A stretch of 64,000 nt of DNA from Klebsormidium nitens (GCA_000708835.1 DF236996.1:154397-218396); one strand, 5' to 3'; positions 2,281 through 59,300 are shown, counted from the first letter of the stretch. Numbers and translations are program-made. The notes: generated by a model from the letters alone, not told the origin.

Positions 2281-4665
2281 CAGGCGTTGTACTTGGGATC
2301 TCCCGAGGCGACCGTCATGCACGCGAGCGCAAACATCCACTTGGTCAGGTAGTGGAAGTACTGCCCGTCGCCGTCTGGGTGCCCCTCCTCGTGCGGCTTG
2401 CCGATGCGCAGCCCGCCCCTGCAGGAGGTCAGCTGACGTCAGCGACTGTGTCACGCACATGTCATGCTTAGGTCACCCTTCTTCTGCTGTGCAGGAGTGC
2501 AATCGTTGAAAAGGCCCTCCTCGTGCGGCTTGCCGATGCGCAGCCCGCCCCTGCAGGAGGTCGGCTGACGTTAGCAACGACGTCCAGCAACATGTCATGG
2601 TCAACGTCATCTTCGTCTATGACACCGCCCTGTGCATGAGCTGGGGCGGCCCTCCTCCGCGTGCGGCTTGCTGATGCGCAGCCCGCTCCTGCAGTATTTC
2701 AGCTGACGTCAGCAACAGCGTGACCAAATGGCATGCTTAGGGCACCTTTCTTATGCTTTACTGAGCAGAAGTTCCTTGGTGAGAGGTTCTCGGAGTGGCG
2801 CTCCTGGTGCGGCTTGCCGAACCGCGCCCCGCCCCTGCAGGAGGTCAGCAACAAAGTTCTGCTGAAATCATGCTGATGTCATGCTCATGTAGCTTGCAGA
2901 GCGTGCAGCAGAGATCGCATCAGCTCGACTGCGCTCCCGGCTGGATCAACTTCGAGGGCGACCCTGTGATTATGTCTGCGAAAGGCTGGAACGTGAGCTT
3001 TGTAAACGCTGCTGTGCGCTTTGCATTCTGCATGTTCATCCGGAAGAAGCCAGGAAGGCAGATCTTGTGCTGAACAATCGCAAGTGCTCCTTGATTTGTA
3101 ATTTGGTATGAGTTACTGGTACGCAACGGATGACAGTAATGGCCTCGCGAGAAGTTCAGAACTGTCGAACGTTTGGTCAATCAATGGAGAAGCAAACAAT
3201 ACGGCAGACTGTGAACCAACGTGGGCGACATTCAGCAGGTTTCTCTCAAAGGCCTTGACTTGGCAATAAAGAGATACGCCAACAGGCTTATAGATTGTTG
3301 CACATAGATTCTCCTGACACGACGAATGCAGTAGAGCAGTATGGAGGTTCTTCGAATCATTAGATACGCTACCTCACCTAGTAGGTTCCTCATCTGTTGC
3401 ATTCCCCAAGCGCCGCCGCCCCTGCCGGTCCTTCCCAAGCGTGTCGTGGACCGTCTTCACAAGAATGGTGGCCTGCATTGGCCTACAAAGATGTGTCAGA
3501 CTAGGGCCCCATAGGACGACCAATGTCTCCAACAACTAGGATGCCATTGAGTGAGCTTCACCAGTCTGCTCCTATCATTCATCCTTGAGTACATGCTGAG
3601 TGTCGCAATCAGCAGGTCAGCCACTGCAAAGCTCATCCTGATCGTGCAGTGCACAAGCAGTGGTATCCAGCTTTTATACAGCGGCAGCAAAAGATCGAGT
3701 GCACAGATCCAGCTGATCATAAAGCAAGCAGATTTTTCCTGGGCCCACCAACATCGACATCAGCCTTGAGCATCAAAGACATCCTTGGTGCTACTTGCAA
3801 TCACCCATGACAACCATCCACTTGACGCCATTCGCTCAGGCGCAGCCAGGATATCTCCCATGGGCTACGAGCTGCTGGCATGACAGCATGCACGACCTGG
3901 ACCAGTTTCAGCACAATCTGGATTGAAACTGGCCATTTGATCCAGCTTTTTCACGAATAGTCTACAAATGAGAACATGCAAAGCCTTCTAAGAGCCGCCA
4001 GCTCATAACAACTGACAGTGAACGCCAATAAACATCGGCATTGCCAGAGACAACTTTGGCTTGCTTTTGCACACCCGCAAGCTTCAAAGCTGCATGGGAG
4101 ACTCTCCCTTGCTGAAACCACCTCCTGACCCCTTTCTTACCTGCTGAAGATACTTGTTCTCCCCCGTCTCAAAGAACAGAGTCAGAAAGTTGCACACCCC
4201 GAACGCATCAGTCCACAGGTAGCGCCCCTTCCCCTCCTTGTAGGGCTTTGGCGCCCACTTGCTGACGTCATCAGCGGGCCCGTACACGTCATCCATGACC
4301 TGGCGGAATTTCTCCAGGGTATGCGCATCGACTGAGTGCCGCCCTGACGAGGAGTTTGCTCCTGCGGGGACCATTGTGCGGCTGCTGAACCCGGGGCCCT
4401 GTGCAAGTTTGTGCAGAGGTCTCCGATGAAGACTGCTGACAGGGGCAATGTGGCTGGATGGAGGAAACAAGGCCTTTGTTCCTGCAGTTGAGCTAAGAGT
4501 TTGAGAATTGCTACTCTTGTCCCTGAAGGCTCTGAATGGATTAAGGAGGGACAAACCCTGCTTCCGGCCGCCACAAGCTGAACCGCCGATCGCTTCGAGT
4601 AAGGAAGGATTCGCAAAAAGAAGCGACTTTCCCGTCCTGCTCCACAGCTGGCACAGGGCCGCCAT
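2281..4665 (-). CDS. Uncharacterised six-hairpin-glycosidase-like protein (GRYLWTDAFGV family); 3'-partial, first 3 exons only
   Basis: Exons 4665-4141, 3472-3378 and 2418-2281 join in phase at GT-AG sites. Peptide: ...KGRYLWTDAFGVCNFLTL...VHDTLGKDRQGRRRLGNATDEEPTRGGLRIGKPHEEGHPDGDGQYFHYLTKWMFALACMTVASGDPKYNAW. I recognise these motifs from an uncharacterised family found in fungi and prokaryotes; the fold assignment is from memory. The start could be ATG 4665 (long S/R-rich leader) or the later MVPAG ATG. No C-terminal exons were found in 1-2280. Confidence 0.75.
2514..2860 (-). repeat. Three intronic echoes of the exon 3 acceptor plus exon start (glycosidase-like gene)
   Basis: ccctcctcgtgcggcttgccgatgcgcagcccgcccctgcaggaggtc at about 2383 (real) recurs exactly at about 2515 and degenerately at about 2647 and 2803. 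Confidence 0.9.
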
Positions 4666-5441
4666 AAAAGTGAGCAAGCGCTCGAGACCTCATCGCTTTT
4701 GACGTTGTACCCCGGCGGTGCTGAACTTGAAGTTGAACTTGAAGTTGTTGGTCAGTGGTCACGTGTTGAGGTGAAGGGATCCCTGCACCCACTGGCGGCC
4801 CGCGGCCGGCAGCCGCACCTCTGCCACTTAAACGCCGACGGTCGTTTGGAACCTTCCAAACCCGCGCGCTAAGCTCGCGGCCAGGCGGCGCGGCTTCGGT
4901 GCGTATGGCGCGCGCGCGCCGGCCATATGTAGTGGAGTAGTACTTTACTGTTTACACAGCTGACGCCTCGTGAAGCCCAGAAATCGTTTGTCGTCAACAC
5001 AGCAGCCGCGCAGAAGCAACCCCAAAGGGCAGCGTTATGCCAAAATTGAAGGATTGATCAAGACGCACCTTGAGAGCTGTTCTTCAGGCATCCATCTCGG
5101 GACGGCCCCAACCTGTAGCTGCATAGTGACAGGCACTTGAGGTGCGCTCCGCTAAGAAGTTGCTTAGTTGCTCAATTGTCTTGCCTGGATTGTTTCCGGT
5201 ATCTGGGAGCCTTCTTCCCGTGCAAGCGTCCGTGGTTCTTGTGCTCGACCCCTTCTCCTTGCGCATCGAGACTGCTTTAGCCTAAAGCCATTAAGATATC
5301 AACACATACATATCTGCATTGCCAGAAAAGCTGCAATCTAGTCGACAGAAGAACAGCTATAAATCTCAAGTCGTTTCTCAGCTCCTCAAAACACTTGGCA
5401 GCAAAAATCTTGACGCTGCTCTTCTGCTTAATTGTTTGCAG

Positions 5442-7570
5442 GTGACAATGATATCACTCTCCACAACCTACCTCTTTCTGAACCAATCAGAACCCTTTCC
5501 TGAACTCTTGTTGGATTACGCAAAAGCGGGAGGCGATACGAAGGAAGTTCTTATCCTGAGTTGGCCTTGTGTAAGTTGCAAGAAAGAAAGAAAGAAGCAT
5601 GATTCTGTTTCGTTTATCATGGCTGCAGTCCGAGAAGACAGAAGTTGAGCGTTTCGATGCTTGGGGTATTGGATCAGGAAGGAGCTTGTAAAGCCTGGCC
5701 AGACTTGCACATAGTGACGCACGTTTGTACTTTCTTGAAATACATGAAGACAGATCGTGCTCACTCTTCTACAAAGTATCCTGCTACTGCATCCAAGGCC
5801 CGACTTCTTCCCTGCTGCCTCTGAGGACTCGATTTGTTTCTGCAGCCTTACGTGGACGAGTATGAACAGCTTCCCTTGCGGAATATCGTGAATGGTAGGT
5901 GCTCACTTTGTGGAGAGGAGTTCTCACTTCTAAGCTTACCATTAGAGCATGAAAAAGTGTGCTTCTTTACGAACAAGACGCGCGCCTCAAAATTCTTTTT
6001 AGAGACAGCTCCAAACGGTGATGTTCGGTACTGGCCCCAAGTTTATGGACACACCTTTTCAGAAAGAAAAGATTTCCTTGACATCAACAGATGCATCAAC
6101 AGACCGCGCCCCTCTGCAAAGACGCTGTCCTGCAGTCTCGAAACCAATGTGTTGTGTAATCTGAACGAAGCTTCGACAGTTCAGCATGCACGCTTCGACT
6201 ACCCCACGCGATACTGCTGTCCGGAATTATCTTTGTTACCACAACTTACGAGGCGTGCCTAGTTCCGCTTGCACATCTTCTCATCTTTGGGTTCACATGC
6301 CTTCATCGAGTAGATGCTGCTTCTCTTATCGAAACCCATGCTCAACGCCTTTGGATTCACGAAAAACGGTTCAGCTAAATAATCCGTCCGCCTGCCAGTT
6401 TTTCAGGGGCATACAACAAGTCTCAAGAGATGACAGTGGCATTCACCAAGAGACTGATTAAAACCCAATCGAGCGACTAGTCCAGTAAAGTGTCTTTAAA
6501 TCCACAGCTTTGACCAGATGTTCATAACTCAGCTTGTCAATTTCTTACCCAGGGGGGGACGACGAGCTCCTTAAACGAGACTCGCACTTCACGATCCGTG
6601 TGGATGTAGCTCTGCTCCAAATCAATGTACTCCACTCCGGCTGACACGATCTCAAATCCTGGAGAGAATCTTCAAGGTCAATGAATTGCAACATGTTTGA
6701 ATGTATGTAGATGGACATACCTTTCAACTTCCTCGCAGACAGACCAGGGTTGCTCAACAAGGACCCAATCATGAAACAAGGGGATGCTTTTGACGACCCA
6801 ATCATGAAACAAGGAGATGCTTTTGCCGACCTGCTCGTCTGGTGGCGACAGACAAGGGGGTGACATTTTTGCGGACCAGACAGGGAGGAAGGAAGTGGAT
6901 TCAAAGAAGCCTTTCGGAGGTCTGCTCTCCCGTGAGGTCTTATGGGCACAGTCCAAAATTCTGCCTTCTTCCTGACAGACTAACTTGAATCCAGGATCTA
7001 GTCTGATGAGCTCAGCTTTCACGTCGCAGCCAGCATTTGCACGCGTGAGTGGCACCTGTGTGTTGCCCATCTCAAAATTCGGATTCGCTGGAGATTTTTA
7101 TCTAACTGCCTTCGAAGGAAGTAAAAGCGCAGGTGCATCCTGGCAGGGGGCAAAAGTCTCAGTCCACAAGGGCTGCGCATTGGTCTTCGACACGCAAAAG
7201 CAGATGCCAGACGCTCGCGTACACGTTACTTGATGGGCGTTGTATACCTAGCAGCTGCCCTTGCAGTCGATTCGTAATATCCAGTTCCAGCTTCTCACGT
7301 TCTCTAAGGACCGTTCTTTAAGCTCTCATGGATGTGCAGGGGCAAGAAGACACGCAACAGGCGGAAGAGCTCGAACGACGAGCAGCACGGGTGAAACGGG
7401 TGGAAGCGATCAGAGCGCGGTGGAAGTCTGCATGCGAGTCGCCAAGCAAGACTACTGAAGAACGGTACGAGATAGAATCACCAGTGACTAAAATATCAGC
7501 GGCCCGACGTAGAATCTTCAAGGTAGTGCGTGCAACCGGTGTCAGCGTTGTGTCCGAGGGGCTGGCTTAG
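5442..7570 (+). other. Possible unknown spliced gene or decayed coding region
   Basis: Several peptide-like open segments follow acceptor-like sites (ttgcag at about 5441, ttctgcag at about 5846, tatgtag|ATG at 6710). ORFs 5834-6262 and 7328-7570 lie here. I could not build a phase-consistent model and recognise no family. Confidence 0.2.
6762..6827 (+). repeat. 33-bp tandem duplication
   Basis: gacccaatcatgaaacaaggggatgcttttgac followed by gacccaatcatgaaacaaggagatgcttttgcc. In one + frame this reads DPIMKQGDAFD / DPIMKQGDAFA. Confidence 0.85.
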
Positions 7571-16026: not shown

Positions 16027-19000
16027 ATGGCGGGCCAAGACCAGCGCGCGGTGCTGATCCGCAAGTTCGACCAGGCGCACTACCTGGACTATCTAGAGGT
16101 GGGGAGGCGCCCCAAGCCGCAGCCCAAGGATGGCGAGGTGCTCATCCGCATGCTGGCCCGCCCCATCGATCCGGCAGGTGGGGGTTTGGGTTCTCAACGG
16201 AATGCTGGCGGAACTTGTGTCTTGTGTGGGTTTTGGTTTCATTTGTGGTGTTCTGACGGAATCTGTTCCTTGAGTGCTCATTCTGCGGAATTTACGGAGC
16301 TTGTGTCGAAGGGGGTGAGAATGTGGGACGAAAGAGTCTTTCTAGACAGATAGCGGACGGAATCCCATTTTGCAACAGAGAAGGTATTGCAAAGTGAACT
16401 TAGAAGCATTAGGGGATTTATGAATAATCCCCTCCGTTGTTGGAACGAAGGCGAATCATTCGTCTGGCAAGGATCTGATGCCAAAATCGTGCTTTCGTTT
16501 TTACGGCTCGCTTCTGGCATGTATCCTATATGTGAGGAATGGAGCTCGTTTAATCGAGGGAAGCTAGCATGGCATTCTCGCAGTTGGTGCATGCCTTGCT
16601 CACGGGAAGCTTTTCAGCATTAGCGCTTTTCTGACGTCTGCGAGATTCGACTTCCAGATGCTTACATGCTTCTTTCATTGCGAGCATTGCGTGCATGCAC
16701 TGCTTTTCGTGCTAAGTCAGTATATTTAAGTCCGAAATACACGCTCCTTTCTTGAGAAGGGCGAAGTGTTTTGGAAACTGCGCCCGTAAGAAAGTATGGG
16801 ATTCTTATATCGGATTCGACCTGCTCTGCGCGGCATTATTTTCACGAGCTCGTGCAACTGCTTTATCCAACGGACTCTCCCTTTGAATCTATCATCCCAC
16901 GTCGTCTTGCATTTTGATCAGCGCATCACTCTACCTTCAGATACTTTTCATTGACATTTCTCAATTGTGAGAGATGATTTTCCGTCTCTGTATCTTCTTT
17001 AGGCAGCTTCACGCTCAGGGGCATCGCTTCTGACAGTCCTCCTACAGTTTTCCCGCTTGTTTCTCACACGCTTTTGGCCTTTAGCATTTAGTGGTCCGAA
17101 AGTTTGTGGATTTGAACCTTCGAAGTGCAAGTGCAGACCCCTTTGTTCCTTAGAAAGTCCCTGTCCTGACGTCACTCCCTGCAATATACTCACATGCCAA
17201 AGCAAGGACCTTGAGTGTGCGTAAGTCTCTCAGACTCACCCGCAGACTATTTTTTGTAGGACAATAAAAAATTGTTGCATCGATCCTGAGAGGAGCATTC
17301 AGTTTCGAACACTTTATCCCGTCCAAACGCTCCTGTCTGCAGACACTGTCTCGCTCAGGGGCATCTAAGTTTGCTCCCCTGCACAAGTTTGCACGAACAT
17401 TTAACCTTTGTTTTTGCAGACGTTCTGTCTCTCAAGGGCATCTATCCTGGCTTTCGCCCGAGCGAGCTTCCGGCGGTACCGGGCCTGGAGGGCATGGGCA
17501 AGGTCGAGGAGGTGCGCACATCTCTATTTTCTTCCTTGTTTCCCTTATCTGCTTTTGATATTCTTTTCTAGGATTCCATTGCAGCCGCAGACGTCAGCAC
17601 TGCTATTTGACGGCGAATTCAGTATCTCTTTTGGGCTCCTCTTTGACTGAGCGGAACGACTCAACCAAAGCATCTCTCGTCGAGGCTCTGTGGACCCGTC
17701 TGAACGCAATTTTTATTCCCCCTGCTTTCTGTGCCATTTCGGCGTCAACTGGTTGTAAACCCAGGGGGATGTGAAGTGCAGATGTACGCATCATATGCAT
17801 AAGAAGGCGCATCGTGTCCGTTTGAGCGGATTTAGGCCGGCGGCACCGTTCGACTGAATATTGGACATATCTATTGAGACCCAATGACATTAAGGTCTGG
17901 GGTTGGCTCAAAAGGAAGCCAATCCTCACCACCTTACCGGATGGGGCTGGACGAGCTCTGGGTTTTCGATCCTGGGACTTCGCTATGTTTTCTTGAAGAC
18001 CAGGAGTGGACGTTTTCAGGCCCCCTTATCGATGGGGATTGACGTGGATATGTCCGGCTTGTCTGGAACTTCCTAATTCGCACCTTAAATCAATCTATTA
18101 CCGAATCCGTTGGATCGGCTAACCCGGTGCGGGTTCCTTAACGGAGCAAAAACTGTGCGCTTTTCAGCTAACCCGTGCGCTTTCAAATCGCCGCCGTCAA
18201 GGTCAAGACCGGGTTCTGCTCGAAGAATGTCTTGCCTTAAAAGCTGACAAGAAGTCCTGAAAATGGGTTGAGAAGAATACCCCGGTTCTATTACCCGTCC
18301 CGAAGATGGCTAATACGTCAACGTATCTGGGGGTTGGAAGCCGGGTTATGGTCAAACATGATTTTCCTAGGACACTGACTCCAAGCTCTGGAGTCAATTT
18401 GGACGGAGGTGCCAGGTTATCCTAACCCAGGTTCTGGGATCAGATCGAACGGTGCTAACCCGAATTACAATCCCCTTCCGCAGGTGGGTCATCACGTCAC
18501 CGCCCTCGAGGTTGGAGACCGGGTGGTGCCCCTTCTAGCGTCCGACTACGCCAAGCACGGCAACGGATCCTGGCAGGTGAGCAGCTCTCCGACGGACACT
18601 TGGCTCAAATTCAAGCCGTAAACTCCGTCCTCGTCGTAAGAGCAGTGAATTCGTCTAGAAACGATCACTCGCAGTGCGGCAACGGTCCCGGCAGGTGGGC
18701 AGCTCTCCGTTGGACACGTGGCTTAAACCTTCGGAGTCGATATCTCGCCCTTCGTACCGGCAAAGAAATATCCATTCAATAGGAATTGGAACTGTGTTTC
18801 TCTGTGCCGATGTCTAGGGATGAGAACGTACGCTGCGAAAACGAGCACTGCAATTGGCGGCCTCAATGTTGGTTTGACCGTTAAGGCAGAACACGAGACC
18901 GAAGGTTCTGACATCAACGGAAATATTCCGAGATTTCCTTCCGAGCGTTATCCATTCTATCAGGAGGTGTGAAGAATCTCACGCTAGCTTTGGCGCGCTA

Positions 19001-43107: not shown

Positions 43108-46100
43108 CTATACATAAACAACGCCCTTGCTACCGTACGCTTCTTGTGCCTTCCTCACTAGCTTGTCTAGGTCCCTAACAATGTTGAACACGGCGTCCGG
43201 CCTGCACAGAGCGACACCAGGTGTCAATCGATGGATCAGAGAGTGGCGTCGCGCTTCAGTCAAAGTCAATAGAAGAGCCCCGGGTTTCACCACACAGTTG
43301 GCAATGAATTCTTGCAACACAGCAACTGTTGACGAGGCTGCGGTGCACTTCGACGGGAGGAGGCTGCTTGCTATGTTGCAACCAACCACGGCTGGCGCGA
43401 TGCCAGAAACTGCCGTCAGTCGGCTTTCAACTCTTGGCTCGACAAGAGGGTCTCGAGTTTTCGGTGAAACCGCTTTACCTCCTGCCTTTGATCAAATGAA
43501 CGGGGATGAGGAAAACAAATGGCGGAGAGAGACTCGAAAGAGGGGAATCAGACAGATAGAGATAGTGGCCAGCAGTACCTGCCCAGCTACGCGGGCAGTC
43601 CTTCGTGTGACGTCAGCTCGTGCTTTTGCTTAACGACCCACTCGGCCGCAACATTCAACATATGGCAATTCAAAGCCTGACCCAAAGAAGTCTTCAAACC
43701 GAAGGCGAGCTGCTTGAGCGCCTTTTTTAATGGCTACAAGCTCTGCCAACGGGCAAACCACTCCCCTACGAACTTACGAAGAGACAGCAAACAAATCAAA
43801 CCTTGTACCCAAGAATGCACGCACCTGGCCAGCTTGAGAGCCCGCTCCTTCATCGCGGTCAGCTCGCCCTTCTTCTCCCCGAACCACTCGGCCACAATGG
43901 TGGCGATCTCGGTGGGTACGTCACTGTACTTGCCACAGCCATTCTCCACGACGAACGGCACGTTTCCCGTCTCCTGCAGTATTTGAAACGCTGACGGTGA
44001 GACTTTTTTTAGAACGTCTTAGGAAAGACTTGTGGTTGACAGCAGTAAACAGGTGGTACGAATCGATCTCGAATACTGACCGTGCCGTTTAAGATCTAGC
44101 CGCCGTTGCGTGAACGGCTTGCTCAGCAAGAGCAATGTAAGCTTTATCAATCCACGACAGTTTTACCTTACTCAAACACAACCGATTGCCAGGTATGTGA
44201 CAGGCGGTGTGGGCAAGGCCCAGGTAGAAACTGCACTCTAAAGTCGTGCCTTGTACAGCTGGGAAGAGGAATCAAAAGAGGTGGTGGGGCATTGGCTCCA
44301 GGGTGCATAGAAGTGAGAGGCCTTACCTGCCCGGCAATAAAGTCATTGAGTACGATGGGCAGTCCCCGGATGAGCGCCTTGAAATCGAAATTGTACCTTG
44401 TATGTGTGGGAAAGAAGAAGTAAAACAACAGGTTGAGATTAGAGTTCAGGGTGCATAGAAGTGACAGGGCCTTACCTGTCCAGCGATGAAGTCGTTCAGC
44501 ACGATGGGCAGTCCCCGGATGAGCGCCTCAGCGATCGTCCCCGGCCCTGCCTTGGTGATGACGCAATCCGAGGCGGCCATCCACTCGGGCATGTTCTTCA
44601 CGAAGCCCTGCACCTGCACGCATGAAGAGTATGATAGTCTGAAGCTGTTGACAATGATGTCACTGCTTTGAGATGAGATTTGGAGTGGCCGAGCTCACCC
44701 GAGATACGGCCTGCAATCGGTTTGGCCAAGGAAGTTCGCAAGATATGGGTCAACGTGCTTGGGCACATAAATACTGCTTTGAAATTTGAGTAGTGCAAGC
44801 GAACACGCCAAGATCAGACAATCTGACGACGGACAAGAATTCAAGAAGGCACCTCAATAATATCAGAGACGTCGTTGAATAATTGCGCAATAGATAAAAC
44901 AGTTACGGTGCTTGGAACGTAGTCCCGGAGTTGCATCAGCTTCGCCATTGACTGCAACCGAACAAAGAGGCACGAAACACATACAGTGTCGGCGAGTCGC
45001 TGCCGCAAATCGCCCGCCGGTGCTTGCTTCCGACGAGCAAAACCAGAACCAGAGAATTAAGGAAATTGTTCCCTTCACTTCTTGCTTGGCAGTGCAAGGT
45101 CAGATCCTAAACCAAAAGGGTGGTCCTCAAAAAGGTACGATATCTGTCGCATCAAAAACAGAGCCAGAAAGTTGGTCTTCCCAAAAGGTACTTACCTGCG
45201 TCGGCATGGGCCAATCCACCGCTTCTAGGATGGACTGCAGCTTCTTGTTTCGCCCGCAAATGATGATCAGCTGCCCCAAGGGGGCGGTTCCGCTCGTCCC
45301 CCCGAGGACGTCCGCAAGTGCCCGGGCCGTCGCTTCTACGGGGCCCATGCCCTCCCCCCCGCCGATGAGAATGACAGCTGGCAGCGTCGGGTGCATCGCG
45401 AGCTGCTGCCGAAGCTCTTTCTGCAAAGGGGGGCACGGAAAGGCAGAAGTGAGGGGAGGGCAATGAAGGTAAAGGTCAGAAGGGCACATGTCCTGCCCTA
45501 CTTCCCGCCAATGAGAATGACAGCTGGCAGCATCGGGTGCATTCCGAGCTGCTGCGGAAGCTCTTTCTGCAATAGGGGGGGACGGAAGATTTAAATTGAT
45601 TTCTGCTTTCGCAGCTTACTGAAGAGCGAGCGAGTGACTTTTGAGAGATGCACGGAAACACACGAGGGTTTGCTGAAGAGGAAGGCAGCAGAAAGTTTAA
45701 AAGATAATAGTGGAGACTCACCCTGGGTGGTAGCTTGCACGCCATATCAGGGCAGATGGGCAGTTCATTGAAATGCAACTCAAACAACTATTGCAGTCTG
45801 GAGATCTAGGAAGGCGAAGAATGGAGACACAAGAAGACAAGAGAAGAAGCGCGAAAAGGCAAAAAACACGGAAACCGCTGCGAAAAAATAGAATCGAGCA
45901 CCCTACAATGAGAAATGTCGAACCCTCGTCCCGTGTGACAGCTTCCGCACGAGGTCTGGGCGGACGGGCAGTCCGGGCACGACTGACTACACTGTCAGGA
46001 TTTTATAGACGCAGAACAGCAGGCAAAGACACGCGTATAGAGTGGGGAGGGGTGAGTGGAAGAGCAGACGGAACGGAATCGAAAGAAGGTTGTGCCTTAC

Positions 46101-49100
46101 CCTGGGCGGTAACTTGCGCACAAAGTCTGGGCGGATGGGCAGACCGTGCAGTCGGACCTGGATCAGTACTTGAGACTAGAGAAACCTTACAAGTACGAAA
46201 AGCAGAGGGAAACGCGGGATCGACGAAATGGAACCAGAAGAAACTCAAGCCTTACCCTGGGCGGTAACTTGCGCGCGAAATCTGGGCGAATGGGCAGACC
46301 GTGCACTCGGACCTGGCCCGGTTGGAGGCCCGCCTTGAGCGCGCGCTCGCCCACCCTGTCCGTGGGGCAGAAACACGTCGTCACCAGCTTGTGGAACCTG
46401 CGGCCACGTCACCATGACGTCAGTATGAGGAAACCTTCTTTGGGGCAGTTGATTCAAGTACATAGCTCTTAGAGTGGACGGCTTCAGCATCTGCGCTCGC
46501 TGCGACCTTCCATTGGACCGAGCGAGTAGTTTCAGCTCGCGAAACTTGCTCTCAAGAGGACGGAGATGCGTCGTGACGGGGTGCAGCGATCCGAAGTCGT
46601 TTCAAATGTTGCTTTCCTTAAATATTTCTCGTCTTTCCGAGCCATCGCAAAAAGCATGGACGTATTTGTGGTGAGATTTGGGCAATAGCAGAGCGAAATC
46701 GACATGCATTCGTTCATCTTGTGAGTCTGTATAGAAGAGCGAAGGCATTGCAGAGAAACTGCTGCAAAGCTCAACACTGCAAGTAGGGCGCACATCATCC
46801 GGTGCCGCCAGGAAGGGACGAGGAAAAATTGAGCAGATTACAGCACAAAACATACAAAAAGACAACCTTCAAAGTTCGGGATGAGGGGAAACGCACAAAG
46901 TTGTCAATCATTCCTTTCGTAACCAGAAACAAAGAAAAGTAGGTGAGTGGAAAGACGACGTTTAGTGAAGAGGAACCGATACGGGAACGACAGGGGGTCA
47001 GGAAACGAAGAAGCTCGACAAACAAAAGCAGAAAGAAAGGGATGAAACTAGAGCGGGGAGAAAGGGCGTTCACCATGTGGCGTGGCAGGTGTCAAGGTGG
47101 CATTCTTTCTCTGGGGCCAGAACTACTGAACAAAGAAATCAAGTCAACGCGCACAGGGTACAAAGCCAACTTTAAGAACAATAAATCTGGGAAAACGAGC
47201 CGTCATCAAGTGGGGTGCCAAGTAAGAGAAACAGACGACCGCTTCGTAAGCAGAACCGGTAAAAACAGACACGTGAGTCAACCCACAAATAAGTAAGAGA
47301 ATAACTCATACCAACCAGGGAACGAACTAGAGCGGGGTCAAAAGGTATTTACCAGGTGGGGTGGCAGGTGTCGAGGTCGGTAATGACGGTGGTGAAGGGG
47401 ATGCGGTGGAGGAGGCCGCGCGAGCGGAGGACGCGCAGGGGCACGTGCTGCATCAGCGGGTGCACGCTAACGATGATGTCAGGCTTGTACTTGACGAACG
47501 CCTTGGCCATCTCCCTGCAGAAGAGGATACAATTGGAGCTGATCAAAAAGTTCGACACGAGGCTCTTCAACATGGCCGGACGTATTTCCCTTCGATTAGG
47601 GACACGACCGATTGTGTCCGGTTTGGACATGACGAACGCCTTCGCCATCTCTCTCAGTGCAAAAAGAGAGGCATCGTGTTGGAAAGATTGACGCAATCTC
47701 CTTCTTCCCAACTGCTGATAGTTTTAAAAATGTCAGGCTTGTACATAACGAACGCCTAAAACGCCTAGTGTCTTTCTTTCCGGATAACCCCGTCGGAAAC
47801 ACTTCTACGCAGGCCTACAAAAAGTAAGGTGGGTTGATCGTGCTTGTCTCCGGCCAATGATACCAACGCCTTGGCAATCTCCTTCAAACGTGCAACAATA
47901 CACCCACCGAGAGGAGAGAGGGGGCTTCTGAATCCGGTCAATTGTTCTTCTTCAATTGTTAAAAGCCCAGTGATTGGACGTGAGCTTGACACGAATCGTC
48001 CTGGGAAACATGCACCAGGTTACGAGAAAAGACACGGGCCACTAAACTGTGGTCGAAAGAACTTCTTTAGATCTGCTCGTATGCCACCGTTCGACATGCT
48101 GCTAACAAGGAGGTCCCTGGGACGAGAAAAGGTGCGCCACATCAAAAAGTCGACTTGGACCTCTGAGATGTGCAACGTGGTTCACTGCCATATTTTGTAA
48201 ATGCTGATTCCAAAATCCTCGACGTGAAACTCTCACACGAGGGTCTGTGCTTTCAAGTTGCCTGAGTTTGGAGAGGCCTTCGCTGTGAGCTGTGTCGTTA
48301 CGCATAGAGTTCAGGACAGACTCGATGAAATCAACCAACGATACAGGAACGGAAACGAGTCACAACAAAACGGGGAAAGAGCGCTTGCCTGGCAACGAAG
48401 GCGGTGGTGGCGACAAAGTGCGGCTGGTGGATAAATTTGGGGCTGCTGAAGTCGAACGCGAGCTTCCAGATCCACTCGTGCTTCACCATGAAGCTGTAGC
48501 TGTCGGGGAACGTGTTGAACGGCCACGGGGTGTGCTCCTTCCACATATCTACGATGATCACCTGCCAAAGGCCGCCGATTCAACCTTTAGAAGTCTTGGA
48601 AATTCACTGATTCACTGGTTGGGCCCATATCGAAAAGTGAGTCGCCAAAGGGTCTTGGTTGATCATTTGACGGTAAAATGACTGGAAGTAAGAAGAAAAT
48701 CAAAGGGACGTGTTGAACAGCCACAGGGTGTGCTCCTTCTACATTATACAATGATTACTTGCCCAGATTAAGCTTCCGGCATCAAGAACTCTAGAATTCT
48801 ACACTTTCTGGGCCTGCAGCATAGGGTGAGTTCGTACAAGGGTCTTGTAGATTTGGTCGGTCGATGGTAAGCTGAGTGGAAATAAATGTGGAAATGAAGG
48901 AACGTGTTGAACGGCCACGGCGTGTGCTCCTTCCACATGTCTACGATGATTAGGACGCAGGGTCTGGGTTCCAGCTTTGAGAACTCTAAAATTCTACACT
49001 TTTGGGTGAGTTCGTAAAAGGGTCTCGTGAATTTGGTTCAGTCGATGGTAAGATGAGTGGAAATTAAAGTGAAAATGAAGGTACTTGTTAGAACGGCCAC

Positions 49101-51714
49101 GGCGTGTGCTTCTTCCACATGTCTGCGATGATCACTTGCGAAGGGGCGCAGTGCCTCAGTTCCAGCTTTGAGAACTCCAAAAATCTACACTTGCCGGGCC
49201 CGCAAGTAGGGTGAGTTTGTGAAAGGGTTTCGTTCTCTGGATCATTCGACGGTAATATGAGCGAAAGGCAAAGGATGTCAAGGAACGTGCCAGAAGTGGG
49301 TTTGAAGTGTCTGGGAGCACATTGTAAGGTGGACGCATAAAAGTGAACTCTTGATGAAGTGGAATATGTCGAATATTCACGGCATGTGCTCCTTCCACGT
49401 GTCTACAAGGATCATCTGCGGAGTGGCGGATGGTCTGATTCCCAGCTTTGAAAAGATCCTGGAGGTTCACACTGGTGGGCCAACAGCGAAGGTGGCCAAA
49501 GGGTCTGGGGGTCTTAATACGTTGACGGTACGATGAGTGGGAGTCGAAACGAGATCAAGGAACATGTTGAACGGCTATAGCTTGTGCTCCTATCAGATGT
49601 CCACGATAAATAAACAACTATGACGGGGTGCAGAGTTCCAGTCTGCGCTGTAAGACCTCGGTATTGCTGTCAGCAGATGAAGCAAACTATCATTTGGATA
49701 TTCGGATGACAGCGAAGTACTTCAGCAGACTGACCCGAATCTTCCATATCTAAAATGTAATGTGTCCCCCATGAGAAGCCTTCAGTCAGTTGCTTTGAAA
49801 TTGGTCGGTGACAGAAGTCGATCTTCAAAGTCCGAATCGGAAGCCTCGCTTTTCTGTTGTAGACAAGGAGGTCTACCGCGCGCACCTATCACCACCCAAT
49901 GGCAACGCAGCTTTGCCAGAGCAAACAAAAGAACTGCCGTGCGCCCTTCAACAACCCTTTACAGCTGGGATCAATGCCCCGTTTAATCCAGTCGGATTCA
50001 GCATCAGACACCCAGTACTCAACACCATTCTAATGATTTCAACGTTGCAAAGGAAGGTGAGGGGTGCCATCAGAGGGGCAAAAAGTGTTATTATAGCATT
50101 GGGCCTTCACATCATCAGTGCTGCCTGAGAAAAACGACGGGGAAGGTCGCAACGCATCTTAAGCAGCACTGCGATGCAACACCTGCCAGGTTTTATAACG
50201 GTCGCACTGTGTTTTACAGTCCTACGCATGTGGCTGCTATTGCAGATGGCGGACCAGACTGGTGTAGCTTTGCAGTCAGTTTTATCTGGATGTACTCTCA
50301 CTTTACAGGCTGACACGTGTGAGTGGAAAGAAAAATCCCAACCAAGCACTATCGAGATGTGCAGTGTTGTGCGACGAGGAGACACAAGCATGCTGTTGAT
50401 CCTTTTGGCGTCCGGCTTCGCTTTGCCGACCAGCAAAGTTCCCAACACACCACTTCTCAACAGTGTGCCTGATTCTCCATATAACCTCCTTGAAAAGTGG
50501 TACTTCTTTTCTGGGATGGAGCCTCACATTATTCAATCACGTCACATACAGAAACATCCTGTAAGTGGCCATCCTTCAGTGTGGTCATTGCTGATTCAAC
50601 GTCCTCTAATCTTCAAGACAGTCTCATTAAGCGACCACGTCTTTCAGAGACATTGTGAGAAGTGATCTTGACATGGTAAAAAGGTGTGTGGTTGTGCTGG
50701 ACACTTCATCGGCCTTTTTGCAATCCAGTGATGCCTGCTTCATTCAGCAACTTGAGTACGCAATAAAGACCTTTTCAAAAAGCAATGCACGCTGAAAAAA
50801 GTGAGCAAAAGATGTGCTTTGCACAGTAGCGGTTCTCCATTTCTGTGATTGAACCAAAATACTTTATTTGAACTTCTATACCCACTTTGACTGGCCCTGT
50901 TCCATTGCTCTAAACAAGGCCCATGCATTTGCACTCATATTCAATGAAGCATAGACTTGATTCCAATGCTTGACTGATTCGTAGCTTGCAAGAGTTCCTT
51001 ATGAAGCACTGCAGCCAACCAGTAGACCCAGCATTGTCACCTCATGAATCAAAAGCTAGGAAGTCAGCTAAAGCCAGCAACCAACTACCAGGCACAGAGG
51101 AACTTAGGAAGAACCCAAACACATTGGAAAGGAGCACCGCCTTCAGCGCTTACCTCATACTGCGTCCCAAACTCCAGAAAGAATGCTGACTTCAGCGCTT
51201 GCGCGCTTGCGCGATGGCCCCCTCCCGTGTCGCTCATCAAAATGAGCACTGTTTTAGGGCCTCCCCGTTCCACTACCGCCTTTCCTTTCGCCCCTCCCGC
51301 CGACGCCAGCAATAGGGGGTCAAAATCCAAGCCGTTGGCACCCCCGGCGTCCGTCGGTGCATTGCTCCCCCCCCCCAACGAAAACGGGTTTAAGCGCATG
51401 CTTCTTTCGAGCAACTTGTCGAGAGCGGAGCTGCTAGGAGTAAGGACGGGCTCAGGAACGGCCATGTGGGTGGGGGTTCGTCGCTTGAACCTTCGCTTTT
51501 GGGGTGCCGCGTCATTTTCCTCTGTCAACAAACCCGGTTTTTGAAGGAGGGGGACGGCTTTTGGTCTCAGCAAAACGGGTGACTGCGCAACGGGGGGGTT
51601 GCAGGAGACTCGCTCTAAAGAACGGTGCTTTGCGGAAGTGCTTTTGCTCCTGCTCAGTGCGGCTTCGAAGAGGTGATGAGAGGCATGGGAAAGGGCGAGA
51701 GAGAGAGACGCCAT
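43108..51714 (-). CDS. MGD1: Monogalactosyldiacylglycerol synthase (GT28), 8 exons, about 547 aa, with a plastid-transit-peptide-like N-terminus
   Basis: Exons 51714-51154, 48561-48389 (GC donor), 47514-47353, 46397-46256, 45420-45196, 44613-44476, 43973-43825, 43201-43108. Motifs: [83 protein letters not shown]. An alternative ATG lies at 51765. The MGD1 versus other MGD type assignment is tentative. Confidence 0.95.
44298..44377 (-). repeat. Echo of the MGD exon 6 end plus donor, with identical peptide
   Basis: 44377-44327 encodes [17 protein letters not shown], the same as the real 44526-44476, and is followed by GTAAGG and a copied intron start. Confidence 0.95.
45490..46165 (-). repeat. 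MGD intron 4: three donor echoes and one acceptor echo
   Basis: Copies of [15 protein letters not shown]|GT lie at about 46162-46095, 45985-45920 and 45770-45715. A copy of cag|[21 protein letters not shown] at about 45575-45495 ends in TAG. Confidence 0.9.
47040..47890 (-). repeat. Echoes around MGD exon 3 (one donor side, three acceptor side)
   Basis: aactagagcgggg...ccangtggngtggcaggtgtc at about 47045 versus the real copy at about 47330. Fragments of gacgaacgccttngccatctc and atgtcaggcttgtac at about 47630, 47730 and 47865 versus the real 47475-47517. Confidence 0.8.
48562..49620 (-). repeat. Tandem array with a unit of about 180-200 bp in MGD intron 1; each unit carries the exon 2 acceptor region and the first 50 nt or so of the exon
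   Basis: ggaacgtgttgaacggccacggngtgtgctccttccacat starts at 48507 (real exon), 48705, 48899, 49080, 49282 (partial), 49361 and 49559. Spacer motifs (ccagctttgagaactc, gggtgagttc, gacggtaa.atgagtgg) recur in most units. Confidence 0.92.
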
Positions 51715-52579: not shown

Positions 52580-55166
52580 ATGGGATCCGACACCGACGAA
52601 GCCACCGGCAAACCCCGGCGCGCCCCCCCACGAAATGCGCAGAAGCAGGTTCTGGTGTGGACTCTAGCTGGTGGGCTCCTCCTTGCGGTGGGCATCTACC
52701 TGTTTGCTAGCGAAACGAGCGTTGCGGAGCTGCGAACCCGCACGCAGGATATGGTGTCTGGGCGGGTTGCGAGCAGGGTTGTGAAAAGTATGGAGTCTGT
52801 GAAGGTAGCAGCAACTGGGGCGGTCTCCGGGGGGACGGATCTTGCGAGAGCGGAGGCGGTATATCGGAGGAATGTGAAGCGGAGGGAGGCGGCATATGGG
52901 CCCCGGCTGGACGGCCAATACCTAGGTGCGCAACTTTGGATATTGACATTGCAGAGTGAAAGTGCAACTGTAGTCTCCCAGAAGGAATTTAACGTTTCTC
53001 CTGAAAAATCCATGTCTGCCCTGTTTGAAGGTTGACGCTTGTGAAATTGACGAACCTCTTTGCATCAAGATGAAGTGTGCGCCATAAGATCTTTGCACAT
53101 CTTCGCACTTCGCATCCCCAAAAGGTGATGCAAACCGTCCTTCGGTGAGACCGCTTATGTTTGCTTGGTGAAGAAAAGCAGGCGGAAGTCTAGTCGGGTC
53201 TTCTGTGGGGTTCTGCACCAGTGTTGCAGTGAATTCTCTTTTCTCAGAGCGTTCCGTAGTAGATGTTATTCCCTGTGTTATTGGGATGTGAAAACCGGCT
53301 ATCTTTGGCTCTGGGAAAATTTTTGGCCATCTACTTTAGCTTGCATACTGTTGAGGAGGCAGTAGCCTCCCTTAAGCGGCACCTCTTTTATTTTGCAACT
53401 TTCTCTGACTTCTGTTGTGGCTGAAAGGTGGTGGAGGCTTGTTACAATCTATTTTTCTGGCTGAAGGTGGTTGAAGGTGGTCGAAATGTTGATATCAAGT
53501 CAGACGATACGTCACTGCATTGCAATTACACGGTAGTCAGTTGTCCACAAGTCTCCTCTGTATCAAACGGACTTTGCAAATCCTCTTCGAGCACCGCCCT
53601 AGATTCACAAAAGATTGCTGACACAGTGTGAAAGCAGCTAATCATGGGTGACACCAGCTGGCAATCCAAGTTCTGGGCGAACCCTTTATAGGCGCCTAGC
53701 TGATCTCAGCACTCGCTCAGACGGCCTCCTCGAACTGTCGCGTACTTCTCTCCACGGTTTGTCCAGGGACCATCTGGACCGTTGCCTTACTACATTGTGA
53801 TTGTTGCTTGCCGTCAGTAACCACTTAAGTGTACTCATGTTGACTCTCTCCTTCGAGCCGTGCAACTCTTAAAATTCTGGGAGCCAATTTCCTGTTTTTC
53901 AGTCCCTTGGTGGCTTTGTCTAGATGACAGAGAATGGCAGCGAACTTAGACACCACTGCTTCCTCTTAGAAGCCCCAGGTTTTGTGTTTGATGTGGCCTG
54001 CTAATCGCAATTGCCAGTCTCACAATTTGAGAGTTATTGGGCAGTGGGACGGAGACAATTGAACGCCTTAAGAGTGGATGACTGGATGAAGTATTCGAAA
54101 GTCGTTTCTCTTTCTGTCTGTTCTTCCAAGTCATTTCAAGACCGACAAGTCAATTCCAGCAGTGTGCGCGCATAGAAAACGAGTCAATGCTCTCCTGGCC
54201 GTGAAAGAGAAATTAGCCAGCCAATCAAAGAGAAACCTTCCACATTGGAAACCGCCCGTGTCAGTGTCCCCCTCCTTACTGTTTCAAATGAGTTCCTGGC
54301 CTTGGCAAGGAAGTTCCAGCGCAGACTTCAGCTCTCCCAGCCTGTCTACATGCACTTAGCAGTGGGCTTGTCCGCTCAGTAAACCAAAGCAACCTACTTC
54401 GTCGCCTTGTAATGAACACAGTCTTTTCCTCCTTCAGCTAAGGGCGCGGTTTTACTTTTAATGAGAACTGTTTGCTTTGGCTTCAGTAAGGAAACGATCT
54501 TACATATAGTGGAAACTGTTCCTTCTACCTTCAGGTAAGGGCGCGGTCTTCCAGTACTTCCAGCCCATCTACCCGTGCGTTGCGGAGGAGCGCGTCGGCT
54601 CCTGGAAGGATGGCGGCAAGTGGCTGTGTGACGTCAGCAGCCTCGGGCCGCGCTCGGTGGTCTACAGCATCGGCTCGTACGAGCTGGTGGACTTCGAGGA
54701 GGCGCTGTACGACCTGACGTCATCCGAGATCCACGTGTTCGACCACACGCTCAACTCGGAGCAGCAGGCGCGGATGAAGGCGAATCAGAAGTTTCACTAC
54801 CACGCGATCGGCCTCGGGGGCGCGGAGAAGGAGGGGCGGCTCTTGCCGCTCATGACGATCATGGAAACGCTAAAGCATGACTTCGTGGACGTGCTGAAGA
54901 TCGATTGCGAGGGGTGCGAGTTCTCGGTGTTTCCCGCGATTTTCCAGGCGTTCGCGGGGCGGGACCCGCCGTTTGGCCAAATACAGTTGGAGGTACACGA
55001 GTATCATGGGGATGTTTGGGACAACGTGAGGGACTTGCTCACGTTGATTGAGAGCCGGGGGTATCGTATGTTCCACATTGATATGAACTGGGAGTGCAAG
55101 GAGTGCATGGAGGTGGCCTTCATCCACGAAAGCGTGGTGCGGTCGGATAAAGTGGCGTCGACATAG
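52580..55166 (+). CDS. Type II membrane SAM-dependent methyltransferase (Methyltransf_22 / METTL24 / FkbM-like), 2 exons, about 325 aa
   Basis: Exons 52580-52925 and 54535-55166 (phase 1). N-terminal TM VLVWTLAGGLLLAVGIYLFA. Motifs: RVGSWKDGGKWLC, VVYSIGSYELVDFEEAL, EIHVFD, DVLKIDCEGCEF, QIQLEVH. Confidence 0.85.
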
Positions 55167-56307: not shown

Positions 56308-59300
56308 TCAAATCTGGGCATCGGAAGCGGACCCGCCAAACCTCGCCCTCCCGTACTCCCTAGGCGGCTCCTTCACCGGATGCTCGCTATAGTGGAGCCC
56401 GATCGACGCGAGCAAGGGGGGCGCGCGCGAGCTGTAAACGCGCACGCGCACTTTGTCGGTGACCACGGCCTCGGTGGTGTGAAGCCGCTTGTGCCCAATA
56501 GTCGTCCCTCCGACGAGCGTGGTCCAGGTGCGCGTGTGGAAGTCGAACACTTGGACGCAGTGCTTCGAGATCCGCTGGCCCAGCTGGATCGGCTCCTGGA
56601 AGCGGACGAAACTCATGGTACGCAAAGGAGATGATGAATGAAGGGAAAATTTGAAGGAGACATCACGCGTTTGGTAATCAAAATGTTTTGCGAGAGGGGC
56701 TGTTGTTCCTTGCTTGGGTTGACCACTGAAAGCGACTTGCTAAGTGTCTGACTGTCTCAGGGCTTGGATATGGATCTTGAGTCGAACAGAAGACCAGGAA
56801 ATTACCAGTGACTCGACGGGTGTGCTGAACCTTGAACGCTTTCGTACGCATTCCAGCGCCCGAAGTATGCCACCTCTCGGCTCAAATTATAAACCGTGTG
56901 CTTCTTAACGGCTCTTGTCCAATCCAGTCCCAACGCTTTCCGTTGAGATGCCGCAAGAGAAGGAAGGCAGCGGAGAAGAGGCTGATCGAGCAAGCAGGAG
57001 GGAAGGAGCCGAACTTTCAAAAAATGGATCTCAGGTGGAAATCAATGGCCGAAAGGTACACATTCCACACCAAGCACTTTCACTTACTCGTATATTAAGC
57101 TTCATATTTTGCTCTTTGATAATCATCATCATCGACCCTGAAAACCCTGTACCTGTAGCCTGACGACGTTGAACGTCTTGTTTGCCGTCATATGCAGCTC
57201 GATTGTTGCCTCCCGCACGTCATCTTCGGTCGCCCAGTACGTCCGGATGTCGTCCGTTAGCACCTGGGGGGGTCCAAATGGCCCGGAATCCGACCCCCCC
57301 CTGACGTTGCTGGCAGTCACGTTGCTGTCGGACGTTGCGTCAGTGGAGAAGATGTCGTCCAGCGCTTTGCGGAAGCCCCGGAGGGCGCTGACGTCAGCAT
57401 CGTCGAAGACGCCCGCTCTGGAGGAAAGGGGAGGATAAACAGCTCAGTGAATGTTTATTTTATCTTGTCTCGAGACGTTCTTGGGGGCGCCGATATTGAG
57501 ACTCCTGCATCTTGCCCCTCATGCAAACGAATCGTGCTCGTGCCTCTCCTCATTTCCCACTTCTTATCTTACCAAATTGTTTCCAAGGTGGAAGGTCGCT
57601 ATGGCGAGATACTCTCGTGACTTATCGAGAATGTCTGTAGCGCGTTCGATATTCTAGAGGGGTCCTCAATGCAGCTGCAACAAAGAGTCTTCGCAATATT
57701 TTGGAGGCATATCTAAGAGGTTCTCAGCGGAAAGACTGTGCTTCCGAGAAGACAATCATTTCAATCAGCAATATCGCCTCGAAGTTTCGTAGCAGCACCT
57801 TGTCCATGAGGTGAATGACGTGATATAAGAGCCTGCGGATCTCTTGCTTTTACGAAAATGACAACGGAATAGAGGTAAGGAACAAGCATGGAAGAAGAAA
57901 GAGAGAGAGGAGAGGATACCATCACACGTCTGTAACGCAGCAAGGAAAGGGGCGATGACTCTGAACCAGATCCGGCGTGAGAAGCGAACAAAGAGAAGAC
58001 TTCGGAAGCTCCCATTGGTAATTCAAATCAAATGCGTCGCATAGGCTGATGTGCCAGAGTTGCCTGGATGAATGGAATTGTCTGGCAATTTCTAACGTTG
58101 CGCAAGCGATCGGATCAGACTTCAAGCGCGTTGTTCACAAGCTTTGATGTGCGTGTTGTACCCACCAAAGGCTCCATCATTCTCCAAAGCAAATCCTCGC
58201 TCTACTGCAGTACCTGTTGGGAGGCACGTTCAGAATGAGATGCCCGTTCCGCCCAACAGAGGTGAAGTAGGTGCCGACGAGCACATCCACCGACTTGGGG
58301 GTTTCTTCCTGGTGGTAGAACCAACCGGGCCGAATCGAAGTGTCGCACTCGGGCGGAATGTAGTCGGGGCCCCCCTCCTCCCCCTCGGAGGCGTAGCTCG
58401 GGGTCGGGGGGTTAGCACCGATGTGGACCTGAGCGAGTTGGGGGGGGAGAAACTTGGGGACAGGGGGGGGGTGAAAGAAGGAAACATCAGGTGTTTGCGG
58501 GATTCGAAGCTTCGGAAGCGGCTGGGTGGGGGGACAACGAAAAATTGTCCAGGTCCCGAATCCGCAAGAAAAAGATTAGGGGGAAGGGGGGATGGGGAAT
58601 GTGGAATTCGGCTGGCCCAGAACGCTGTAAAACGTCACCTGCTCGAAAAAGAAAAGTCATCAGGAGGTTTCGAACCGAGGGTCTGTGGCGTTGCCACGTG
58701 TCACGCACCTATTGGGCGGCACGTTCAGGAGCATGTGACAGTTCCTGCCCACGGTTGAGAAGTAAATGCCGAGCAGGGTTTCGAGCGGTTTGGGCGCTTG
58801 ACCCGGGTGCCAAAACCAGGCGGGCCGGATCGACGTCTCGCACTCTGCGGGGGCGTAGTCCGGCTCCCCCTCCTGCCCGGTTGACAAATAACCGGCCACT
58901 GCAGAGCCGCCCCCAAGCTTGACCTGCGAGAAAAACGTGGCGCAAAGAATCTCTTTGAAAGCTTTTGTTAGAATTCTCGAGTTTTGTGCTTCAAGACAAA
59001 AACGATAGTCCGGGGGTTTTTCCTTGCCCCGTGACACATAATTGGCCACTGCAGAGCCGCCCCCGAGCTTGACTTGCGAGGGAAACACGGTGCAAAGAGA
59101 CCTGTTATGGGAGTTCAGGTTTGATGCTGTGTTTCGCAACAAACGGAAGTATTTGGAAGGTGGATGTCCTTGCAACTGTCTGAAAATGGGGGCGTAAATG
59201 TCCTGATTGTAGAGTCTGTGATCAGAGTCGTTGGTTCCCGCTGCATCCATACAAGGCAATATGAAACTATTGTGGGTATATTTCAGTTCGAGAATCAAGC

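Follow-up and report, generated by a model that had tools for sequence, protein, structure and literature searches.

We describe here an unusual organisation of introns in a 64-kb stretch of the Klebsormidium nitens genome (GCA_000708835.1, DF236996.1:154397-218396), which we refer to as the window, meaning all 64,000 nucleotides analysed, numbered from the first. The introns of six genes in the window (glycosidase-like, MDR dehydrogenase, TBC, MGD, methyltransferase and fucosidase) hold partial copies of the neighbouring exon-intron boundary, which we call echoes, the live copy being the one that is continuous with the exon. We consider it likely, with a probability of about 0.78, that the echoes are locus-specific minisatellites anchored on splice junctions and that only the exon-continuous copy is spliced. 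Direct support for this comes from the structure and polarity of the arrays, site use in MGD, the neutral decay of the echoes, their turnover between species, and one clean tandem event.

The repeats in the window are local and direct. Self-comparison of the whole window (G+C about 50%) by blastn gives 28 direct and no inverted high-scoring segment pairs (HSPs), spaced 92-854 bp apart and none of them dispersed, and a more sensitive tiled search gives 39 direct HSPs and a single weak inverted one, with the best E-values reaching 1e-76. A separate repeat finder recovers the same families with spacings mostly of 130-200 bp, and Tandem Repeats Finder, run on the window, misses the echo arrays because the copies are too diverged. 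The clusters lie at 2.4-2.9, 18.5-21.8, 34.4-34.7, 43.6-49.6 and 58.2-59.1 kb, with a weak pair at 54.4 kb, and comprise 13 strong and about four weak families in the six genes, every one of them anchored on a splice junction. The initial annotation of this DNA had proposed about 17 such junctions in six genes and units of 90-200 bp that include 15-80 nt of exon, and the measured values agree well with it: the periods are 92-208 bp, plus two of about 280 bp, the exon share is 15-80 nt, and copies number at most five or six. Within the 64 kb, the members of a repeat pair are never more than 1.1 kb apart. RPF2 and the GH16 gene, in which the initial annotation had seen no echoes, could be judged only by the lack of local repeats in self-comparison at 3-17 kb and 22.6-34 kb, stretches that have no gene models. 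That the repeats reflect chance similarity, a mobile element (an introner or a miniature inverted-repeat transposable element) or an artefact of assembly strikes us as extremely improbable. The E-values and the 39:1 ratio of direct to inverted HSPs speak against chance, and a mobile element is difficult to reconcile with the lack of a dispersed copy of any family and with spacers that match nothing else in the window; the evidence on assembly is considered below.

The polarity of the echoes is strict. The initial annotation had suggested comparing exon ends with adjacent and non-adjacent introns, and we aligned the terminal 60 nt of each MGD and MDR exon end (24 junctions) to four targets. The adjacent intron yields scores of 35-95 at nine of the 24 junctions, compared with at most 19 for the intron across the same exon, at most 22 for the reverse strand of the adjacent intron, and a maximum of 26 (mean about 16.5) in about 240 non-adjacent comparisons. 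Acceptor echoes therefore lie upstream of the exon and donor echoes downstream of it, as had been claimed, and the adjacency is exclusive. Repeated masking identifies 20 echoes at 10 MGD and MDR junctions, one of them a weak match of 15 nt at MDR exon 7. With an exon part of only some 19 nt, the donor echo of MDR exon 3 does not reach the exon-only threshold; it is found by blastn.

MGD, which encodes a plastid-type MGDG synthase on the minus strand and so indicates a green-lineage alga, is defined by RNA contigs of three runs from three studies, which give four splice joints and five internal exons; the positions of the flanking exons, 51154 and 43973, follow from the loose ends of these contigs. 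With ambiguous bases resolved, five of its six introns are GT-AG and intron 2 is GC-AG. The MDR dehydrogenase gene lies on the plus strand at 16027-22560 and has seven exons that form a complete 339-aa open reading frame (ORF); no RNA contig maps to 17100-23000, and its splice sites therefore rest on ORF continuity, GT-AG sites and G+C content at third codon positions (GC3), which is 86% in coding sequence as against 49% G+C in introns. The GC3-based exon scan is usable for MGD and MDR rather than for the whole window, and 3-17 and 22.6-43 kb are without full gene models. Single-exon Pfam matches are collinear with both models, and exons of the TBC, methyltransferase and fucosidase genes were identified likewise; the ten longest ORFs of the window have no Pfam match because the exons are short.

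RNA contigs of the three runs join only authentic, exon-continuous sites in MGD, and the RNA-defined junctions fall inside the live units, which for this gene agrees with the proposal that the copy continuous with the exon is the one used, with the proviso that contigs drop rare isoforms and are blind to mis-spliced forms that are rare or degraded by nonsense-mediated decay. The silent copies often look serviceable, as had also been observed: GT is retained in seven of eight donor echoes, frequently as GTAAGG or GTGAG, and AG in about 60% of acceptor echoes, ranging from one of five at MGD exon 2 to three of three in the glycosidase-like gene. It had been argued from this that splice sites are chosen by exon definition, which is one of two possible readings. 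Scanning from 5' to 3' for the first donor, as in intron 7 of human F7 (PMC1557585), would account for silent donor decoys just as well, such that on our analysis intact but unused donors would fit exon definition and first-donor choice equally; on the acceptor side, AG has been lost in about 40% of the decoys.

Comparison of orthologous introns in a relative, which the initial annotation had also suggested, was possible with an 11.5-kb contig of a sister species (L001) that comes from another sequencing run and was reached through ORF fragments matching MGD exon 5. L001 is syntenic with the window, the methyltransferase gene being followed by MGD; MGD exons 2-7 are 93-96% identical and exon 1 is 84.5% identical, and all six introns occupy the same positions. 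It contains 16 local direct repeats and no inverted ones, and its arrays sit at the same MGD junctions as those of the window with other copy numbers and breakpoints. The window and L001 have, respectively, five and three echoes at the exon 2 acceptor, none and two at the exon 2 donor, three and two at the exon 3 acceptor, one each at the exon 3 donor, three and two at the exon 4 donor, one and three at the exon 5 acceptor, and one and none at the exon 6 donor, so that copy number differs between the species at six MGD junctions. The orthologous methyltransferase exon in L001 also has its own echo, with a period of 172.

Three of these junctions are informative about how the arrays arise and change. 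At the MGD exon 6 donor, a three-way alignment with L001, which lacks the echo, shows that 53 nt of exon and 95 nt of intron were cleanly duplicated in tandem, 148 bp in all, with homology continuing through a 29-nt piece that blastn left unaligned. At the exon 5 acceptor, the exon-side breakpoints of the echoes are at 49 and 59-62 nt in L001 and at about 78 nt in the window, and the same junction has therefore been duplicated more than once. At the exon 2 acceptor, the distances of the echoes from the acceptor are near-equal in the window and L001 (143/139, 337/339 and 518/538 nt), and neighbouring units within a species are closer to each other (83% and 77% in the intron part) than are positional counterparts across species; this array behaves as a tandem array that is still exchanging units. 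The orthologous MGD introns (43974-51153, and 4584-11394 in L001) are almost unalignable, with no HSP at all in the echo-free intron 5, and parts of the upstream intergenic region align between the two at 75-80%. Intron sequence seems to turn over faster than the flanking non-coding DNA.

The concern that the arrays were created during assembly, which had been raised together with their first description, is contradicted by two lines of evidence. Low-depth unspliced RNA contigs from independent studies and libraries reproduce the arrays base for base, for example at 48574-49235 (three units) and at 44000-44504 (an echo and the live junction), and the sister species has arrays that are homologous but different. 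Together these exclude an artefact and indicate that the process is recurrent, even though a DNA contig holding the region may share its sample with the assembly. Beyond the sister species, a scan of metagenomes returned only distant MGD relatives, and a search for homologous proteins with MDR exon 4 gave no candidate. One more distant relative (L002) has a 1.7-kb intron with no local repeats. We also note that a still more distant relative from a metagenome (L003, 8264-10870) has a compact MGD with introns of about 230 nt and is without introns at the positions of window introns 2 and 6.

Two further features of MGD intron 2 (47515-48388; 6278-7404 in L001) were observed in this comparison. 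It is GC-AG in both species (GCAAGC versus GCGAGC), and the first donor echo of L001 at this intron (6355-6428 in L001) has a canonical GTGAGA, on paper a better donor than the live one.

The fate of the echoes is neutral decay. A raw comparison of echoes with live exons gives 64 synonymous, 55 non-synonymous and five stop-creating differences, that is, 52% synonymous compared with a simple expectation of 37%, and this excess is what would be expected if echoes were functional, either as alternative or mutually exclusive exon parts or as selected decoy or poison exons. The retention of strong GT sites in donor decoys would fit the same idea, as would the MDR exon 5 echo, which forms a 39-nt pseudo-exon in frame and with both AG and GT, and one echo whose seven differences are all synonymous. 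We nonetheless regard a function as quite unlikely, because the excess dissolves when the MGD changes are polarised with L001 as outgroup. The echo lineage accounts for 63 of the 82 differences, and these are spread evenly over codon positions 1, 2 and 3 (14, 24 and 25); a further 15 of the 82 belong to the live-exon lineage, where only synonymous changes survive, and it is these, together with C>T changes at GC-rich third positions, that generate the synonymous excess. In the echo with seven synonymous differences, four of them are live-lineage and three are third-position C>T changes, two of these at CpG. The echo-lineage spectrum (44327-49607) contains 33 GC>AT and 12 AT>GC changes, with 21 of the 63 at CpG, and the even spread over codon positions together with this bias shows that the echoes decay neutrally. 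Several echoes carry stops and frameshifting gaps, all are only parts of exons, the RNA contigs contain no alternative joints, and echoes are gained and lost between the sister species. Coding selection on the echoes was rejected once changes had been polarised, and the partial echoes lend no support to the suggestion that they supply new or alternative exons; the only candidate for an alternative exon is a whole-exon duplicate in the fucosidase gene, described below. As an aside, the CpG and GC>AT bias in the MGD echoes is consistent with methylated CpG in gene bodies.

Homology runs head to tail over whole units at MGD exon 2, MDR exon 4 and MDR exon 6 (the last as a continuous HSP) and in the glycosidase-like and TBC arrays, although in unit-by-unit alignment of the glycosidase and MDR exon 6 arrays the identity of the distal intron parts is at random level, and in several two-copy families only a core can be aligned. 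The conserved intron part of the mosaic acceptor echoes is 20-40 nt, approximately the distance from a branch point to the AG, which raises the possibility that the echoes are RNA-mediated, complementary DNA copied from a splicing intermediate or a piece of pre-mRNA (one running, for instance, from the branch point through the 3' splice site into the first part of the exon) being inserted or converted into the nearby intron. We consider such an origin very unlikely, as the homology reaches upstream of the putative branch motifs, donor echoes hold 27-95 nt of intron for which there is no comparable RNA intermediate, several arrays are whole-unit tandem repeats, and the sole dated event, at the MGD exon 6 donor, is a plain tandem duplication.

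Several observations weigh against reading the echoes as junction-anchored minisatellites that duplicate and then simply decay. In several families homology is limited to a core made of the exon part and 20-40 nt of intron, and the rest of the unit is at random-level identity even beside cores with 90-100% identity (for example in echo 1 of the glycosidase-like gene and, within MDR, in the exon 5 echo and in the echo of exon 6 at 21402), which is not predicted by simple tandem duplication with uniform neutral decay. The pattern would require either that short tracts of the echoes have undergone gene conversion by the live copy or that copies of the core alone have been inserted, and conversion of this kind would prolong the visibility of junction arrays. 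Neither does identity to the live exon fall steadily with distance: in the MGD exon 2 array it is 87, 96, 89, 84 and 78% from the nearest echo to the farthest, and the earlier description of the copies as decaying needs this correction. Echo-to-echo duplications within arrays are themselves intron-only events, and the preference for junctions could be inflated if intron-only repeats are erased faster than assumed, the orthologous introns being almost unalignable. Lastly, the RNA check on use of the live site covers MGD only.

Many of these points would be accommodated by untargeted duplication, in which events of about 150 bp occur anywhere, the junction arrays stay visible through short-tract conversion from the live copy, and arrays in introns and intergenic DNA fade. 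Mosaic units with a core far better conserved than its flanks, the non-monotonic identity, the greater likeness of units within than between species at matched exon 2 positions, and the poor alignment of orthologous introns are all as it would predict. We think it rather unlikely all the same. Intron-derived homology of 70-83% is still detectable in several arrays, yet there is no young intron-only duplicate in the 64 kb of the window and the 11.5 kb of L001; four ancestral states since replaced in the live exon survive in the donor echo of MGD exon 6, which argues against recent conversion there; and the different exon-side breakpoints at one junction point to separate primary events.

Duplication across junctions has lengthened these introns. 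In MGD and MDR, 31% of the total intron length of 11.8 kb is taken up by recognisable arrays, and this, with the same junction hit repeatedly and copy numbers that differ between species, supports the initial proposal that recurrent, junction-centred duplication lengthens introns. From intron lengths we calculate that uniform placement of 150-bp duplications in MGD and MDR would offer about 3000 starts across a junction and about 10000 wholly intronic ones (about 23% across a junction), and the tiled search of the window contains no primary family that is wholly intronic or intergenic. On these sequence comparisons the junction preference looks real. Short ancestral introns could also have forced duplications across junctions, an explanation that fails for the recent events because the introns of the sister species are long as well (438-1521 nt).

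The geometry of the units has a further regularity. In eight of the 13 strong families, donors and acceptors alike, the live junction is separated from the exon part of the nearest echo by 94-101 nt of intron (for example 2419-2514, 20232-20325, 44380-44475, 46162-46255 and 47515-47608), a range picked post hoc from data already seen. These eight families have exon parts of 19-62 nt and units of 119-160 nt (mean about 142); the regularity is not reproduced in L001, where the values are 73-139 nt, and 234. Occurrence of the same spacing at donors and acceptors points to a feature of DNA or chromatin and not of RNA. It is possible, and we propose it tentatively, that the mutational process is itself targeted to junctions, with one breakpoint about 94-101 nt into the intron and the other 19-62 nt (15-80 nt over all families) into the exon, and a mean unit of approximately one nucleosome. 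If this is true, it would suggest that chromatin or co-transcriptional splicing complexes set the phase of the breaks, and the arrays would represent an unrecognised genome-wide engine of intron growth and a natural library of thousands of real and decoy site pairs. Other explanations of the spacer did not hold. Filler DNA was rejected, the spacers having no match elsewhere in the window, and at MDR exon 5 specifically the spacer resembles neither the upstream flank nor the exon. The approximately 94-nt piece between echo and exon is also a poor mini-intron, as it starts with GT in only two of six acceptor cases.

The duplication mechanism and the cause of the junction preference we infer from these patterns. 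The initial event would be a short tandem duplication of a unit of about 90-200 bp that straddles the exon-intron boundary, containing 15-80 nt of the exon end and about 55-140 nt (most often 94-101 nt) of adjoining intron. One copy would stay continuous with the exon and the other would be stranded in the intron, and the gene would survive the duplication because splicing at the exon-continuous copy restores the original mRNA. Later duplication or unequal exchange would both add and remove units, giving arrays of one to six echoes that turn over on the time scale of species divergence, and introns would grow in steps of about 150 bp. The non-coding echoes would then decay neutrally with a GC>AT and CpG-rich spectrum, many acceptor decoys losing their AG and donor decoys staying mostly intact but unused. 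For the junction preference, our leading guess is that breakage may be phased relative to the junction by chromatin or transcription, followed by purging of duplications within exons.

Single-locus precedents for such arrays are known. Intron 7 of human F7 contains a variable number of tandem repeats (VNTR), a minisatellite with a 37-bp unit in which the exon 7 donor is enclosed by the first repeat (Borensztajn et al. 2006, PMC1557585); the downstream pseudo-donors are silent, and the most upstream site is chosen by 5'-to-3' scanning (PMC1557585). The arrays here are likewise head to tail, with the authentic splice site in the unit adjoining the exon and a variable copy number (between species in this case), whereas the F7 VNTR is one vertebrate locus with 37-bp identical copies at a donor only, and here units of 92-208 bp, with diverged copies, occur at donors and acceptors, at about 17 junctions in 64 kb. 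Introns can also be gained by tandem genomic duplication, as in the Rogers model, where an exonic AGGT segment is duplicated and a new intron forms from exon sequence (Hellsten et al. 2011, PMC3265369; Ma et al. 2016, PMC4974935; Drosophila, PMC2891723). That model shares with ours a short tandem duplication hidden from the mRNA by splicing, with the duplicated splice signals remaining, but our units contain pre-existing intron, the original donor or acceptor is used, the introns are shared with the sister species, and the outcome is lengthening. In green algae, tandem repeats are in excess in introns and concentrate near the ends of introns (Zhao et al. 2014, PMC3887541; Chlamydomonas v6 genome, PMC9940879), which resembles the location near junctions seen here; those surveys, however, are motif-based, deal mostly with short units, and do not report exon-containing units, splice decoys or polarity. 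Introners, which are transposon-derived and create new introns as dispersed multi-copy families (PMC9860276), similarly reshape introns in a lineage-specific manner on a genomic scale, whereas each echo family is unique to its own junction with no dispersed copies in the window. Clusters of mutually exclusive exons, the products of tandem exon duplication, share their anatomy with the fucosidase exon pair only; the echoes differ from them in comprising just 15-80 nt of 92-225-nt exons, with one splice site, stops or frameshifts, and neutral decay. We found no description in the literature of junction-spanning arrays at such density, on donors and acceptors, that turn over between species, and it is in the density, the two junction types and the species turnover that the present case is new, the single-locus precedents (F7 and the intron-creating duplications) and surveys of intron repeats having been known before.

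The arrays bear on two long-standing questions, how introns grow and how the spliceosome chooses between real sites and equally good decoys. The genome appears to contain a great many natural pairs of real and decoy sites whose local sequence is shared and which are set apart only by position and age, a situation close to a designed experiment on splice choice. Turnover of the arrays between sister species means that the rates at which intron sequence is born, decays and is lost can be measured directly, and a junction preference of mutational origin would tie one specific class of structural mutation to chromatin or transcription. For gene prediction the arrays present a practical hazard, since pseudo-exons combine an exon-like composition with splice sites that are intact.

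The MGD arrays, all on the minus strand, lie in the 43.6-49.6 kb cluster. At the exon 2 acceptor (48499-49612) the live copy is at 48499-48561 and the echoes start at 48697, 48891, 49073, 49353 and 49551, with a period of about 182-198 and a single gap of 280. The exon 3 acceptor array (47471-47882) has its live copy at 47471-47516 and echoes at 47609-47654, 47730-47757 and 47862-47882, and the exon 3 donor (47038-47377) has a live copy at 47317-47377 and one echo at 47038-47098 that retains GT. The exon 4 donor array (45714-46316) consists of the live copy at 46222-46316 and echoes at 46067-46161, 45942-45980 and 45714-45771. At the exon 5 acceptor (45348-45587), the live copy (45348-45440) is accompanied by an AG-retaining echo at 45494-45587 with the exon part of about 78 nt noted above, and at the exon 6 donor (44261-44556) the echo unit (44261-44408) abuts the live unit (44409-44556).

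In MDR, on the plus strand, the array at the exon 4 donor (19399-19801) has its live copy from 19399 and echoes from 19547 and 19702, with exon parts of 78 nt that are 90% and 83% identical to the live exon and GT retained in both. The exon 3 donor (18558-18727) has a live copy at 18558-18609 and an echo at 18677-18727, with GT retained, 86.5% identity over 52 nt and a period of 119. The exon 6 acceptor array (21064-21792) contains three or four echoes with a period of about 160-169 and a live copy at 21708-21792, and the exon part of the echo at 21402-21463 is 90% identical. A weak echo at the exon 2 acceptor (17333-17445), found by reading, precedes the live acceptor at 17420 by about 76 nt and consists of ctgcag followed directly by ACACTGTCTCGCTCAGGGGCATCTA; its score of 28 is close to the null maximum of 26. 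At the exon 5 acceptor (20154-20368), the echo (20154-20231) differs from the live copy (20290-20368) at one of 39 nt in the exon part and at eight positions in the 36-nt intron part, and no homolog of the 57-58-nt spacer is detectable. The pseudo-exon in this echo (20189-20231) has an intact CGCAG acceptor and is followed by GTGCAT; judged by its sequence, it could be a ready-made candidate for a cassette exon and a trap for gene predictors.

The glycosidase-like acceptor array, on the minus strand at 2383-2940, has a live unit at 2383-2514, with the exon start at 2418, and echoes at 2515-2652, at 2653-2798 and from 2799. Its units combine 36 nt of exon with about 96-110 nt of intron, CTGCAG is kept in all three echoes, and echo 1 matches the live exon at 36 of 36 positions of its exon part. 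The TBC (RabGAP) acceptor array, on the plus strand at 34393-34707, has a period of 92 (53 nt of intron and 39 nt of exon) and two or three echoes, each with TGCAG retained, and its live exon matches RabGAP-TBC in Pfam. The weak methyltransferase family (plus strand, 54431-54550) consists of an acceptor and some 15 nt of exon and sits 97 nt before the start of the live exon at 54535. The fucosidase acceptor (minus strand, 58874-59098) has a live copy at 58874-58948 and an echo at 59025-59098 that is 84% identical with a period of 151, and in which CAG/G has become CAA/G.

The fucosidase gene also contains the whole-exon duplicate (minus strand, 58213-58923), which is related to the echoes but is a different kind of event. 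The two 72-codon exons, at 58708-58923 and 58213-58428, are 495 bp apart and about 70% identical in DNA, and both are open and flanked by AG and GT. Both match positions of about 273-320 of the Alpha_L_fucos profile, and as both cannot fit one domain, they may be either mutually exclusive exons or an exon and a pseudo-exon. Separate from all of the echo families is a 33-bp tandem repeat at 6762-6831, with 2.1 copies at 94% identity.

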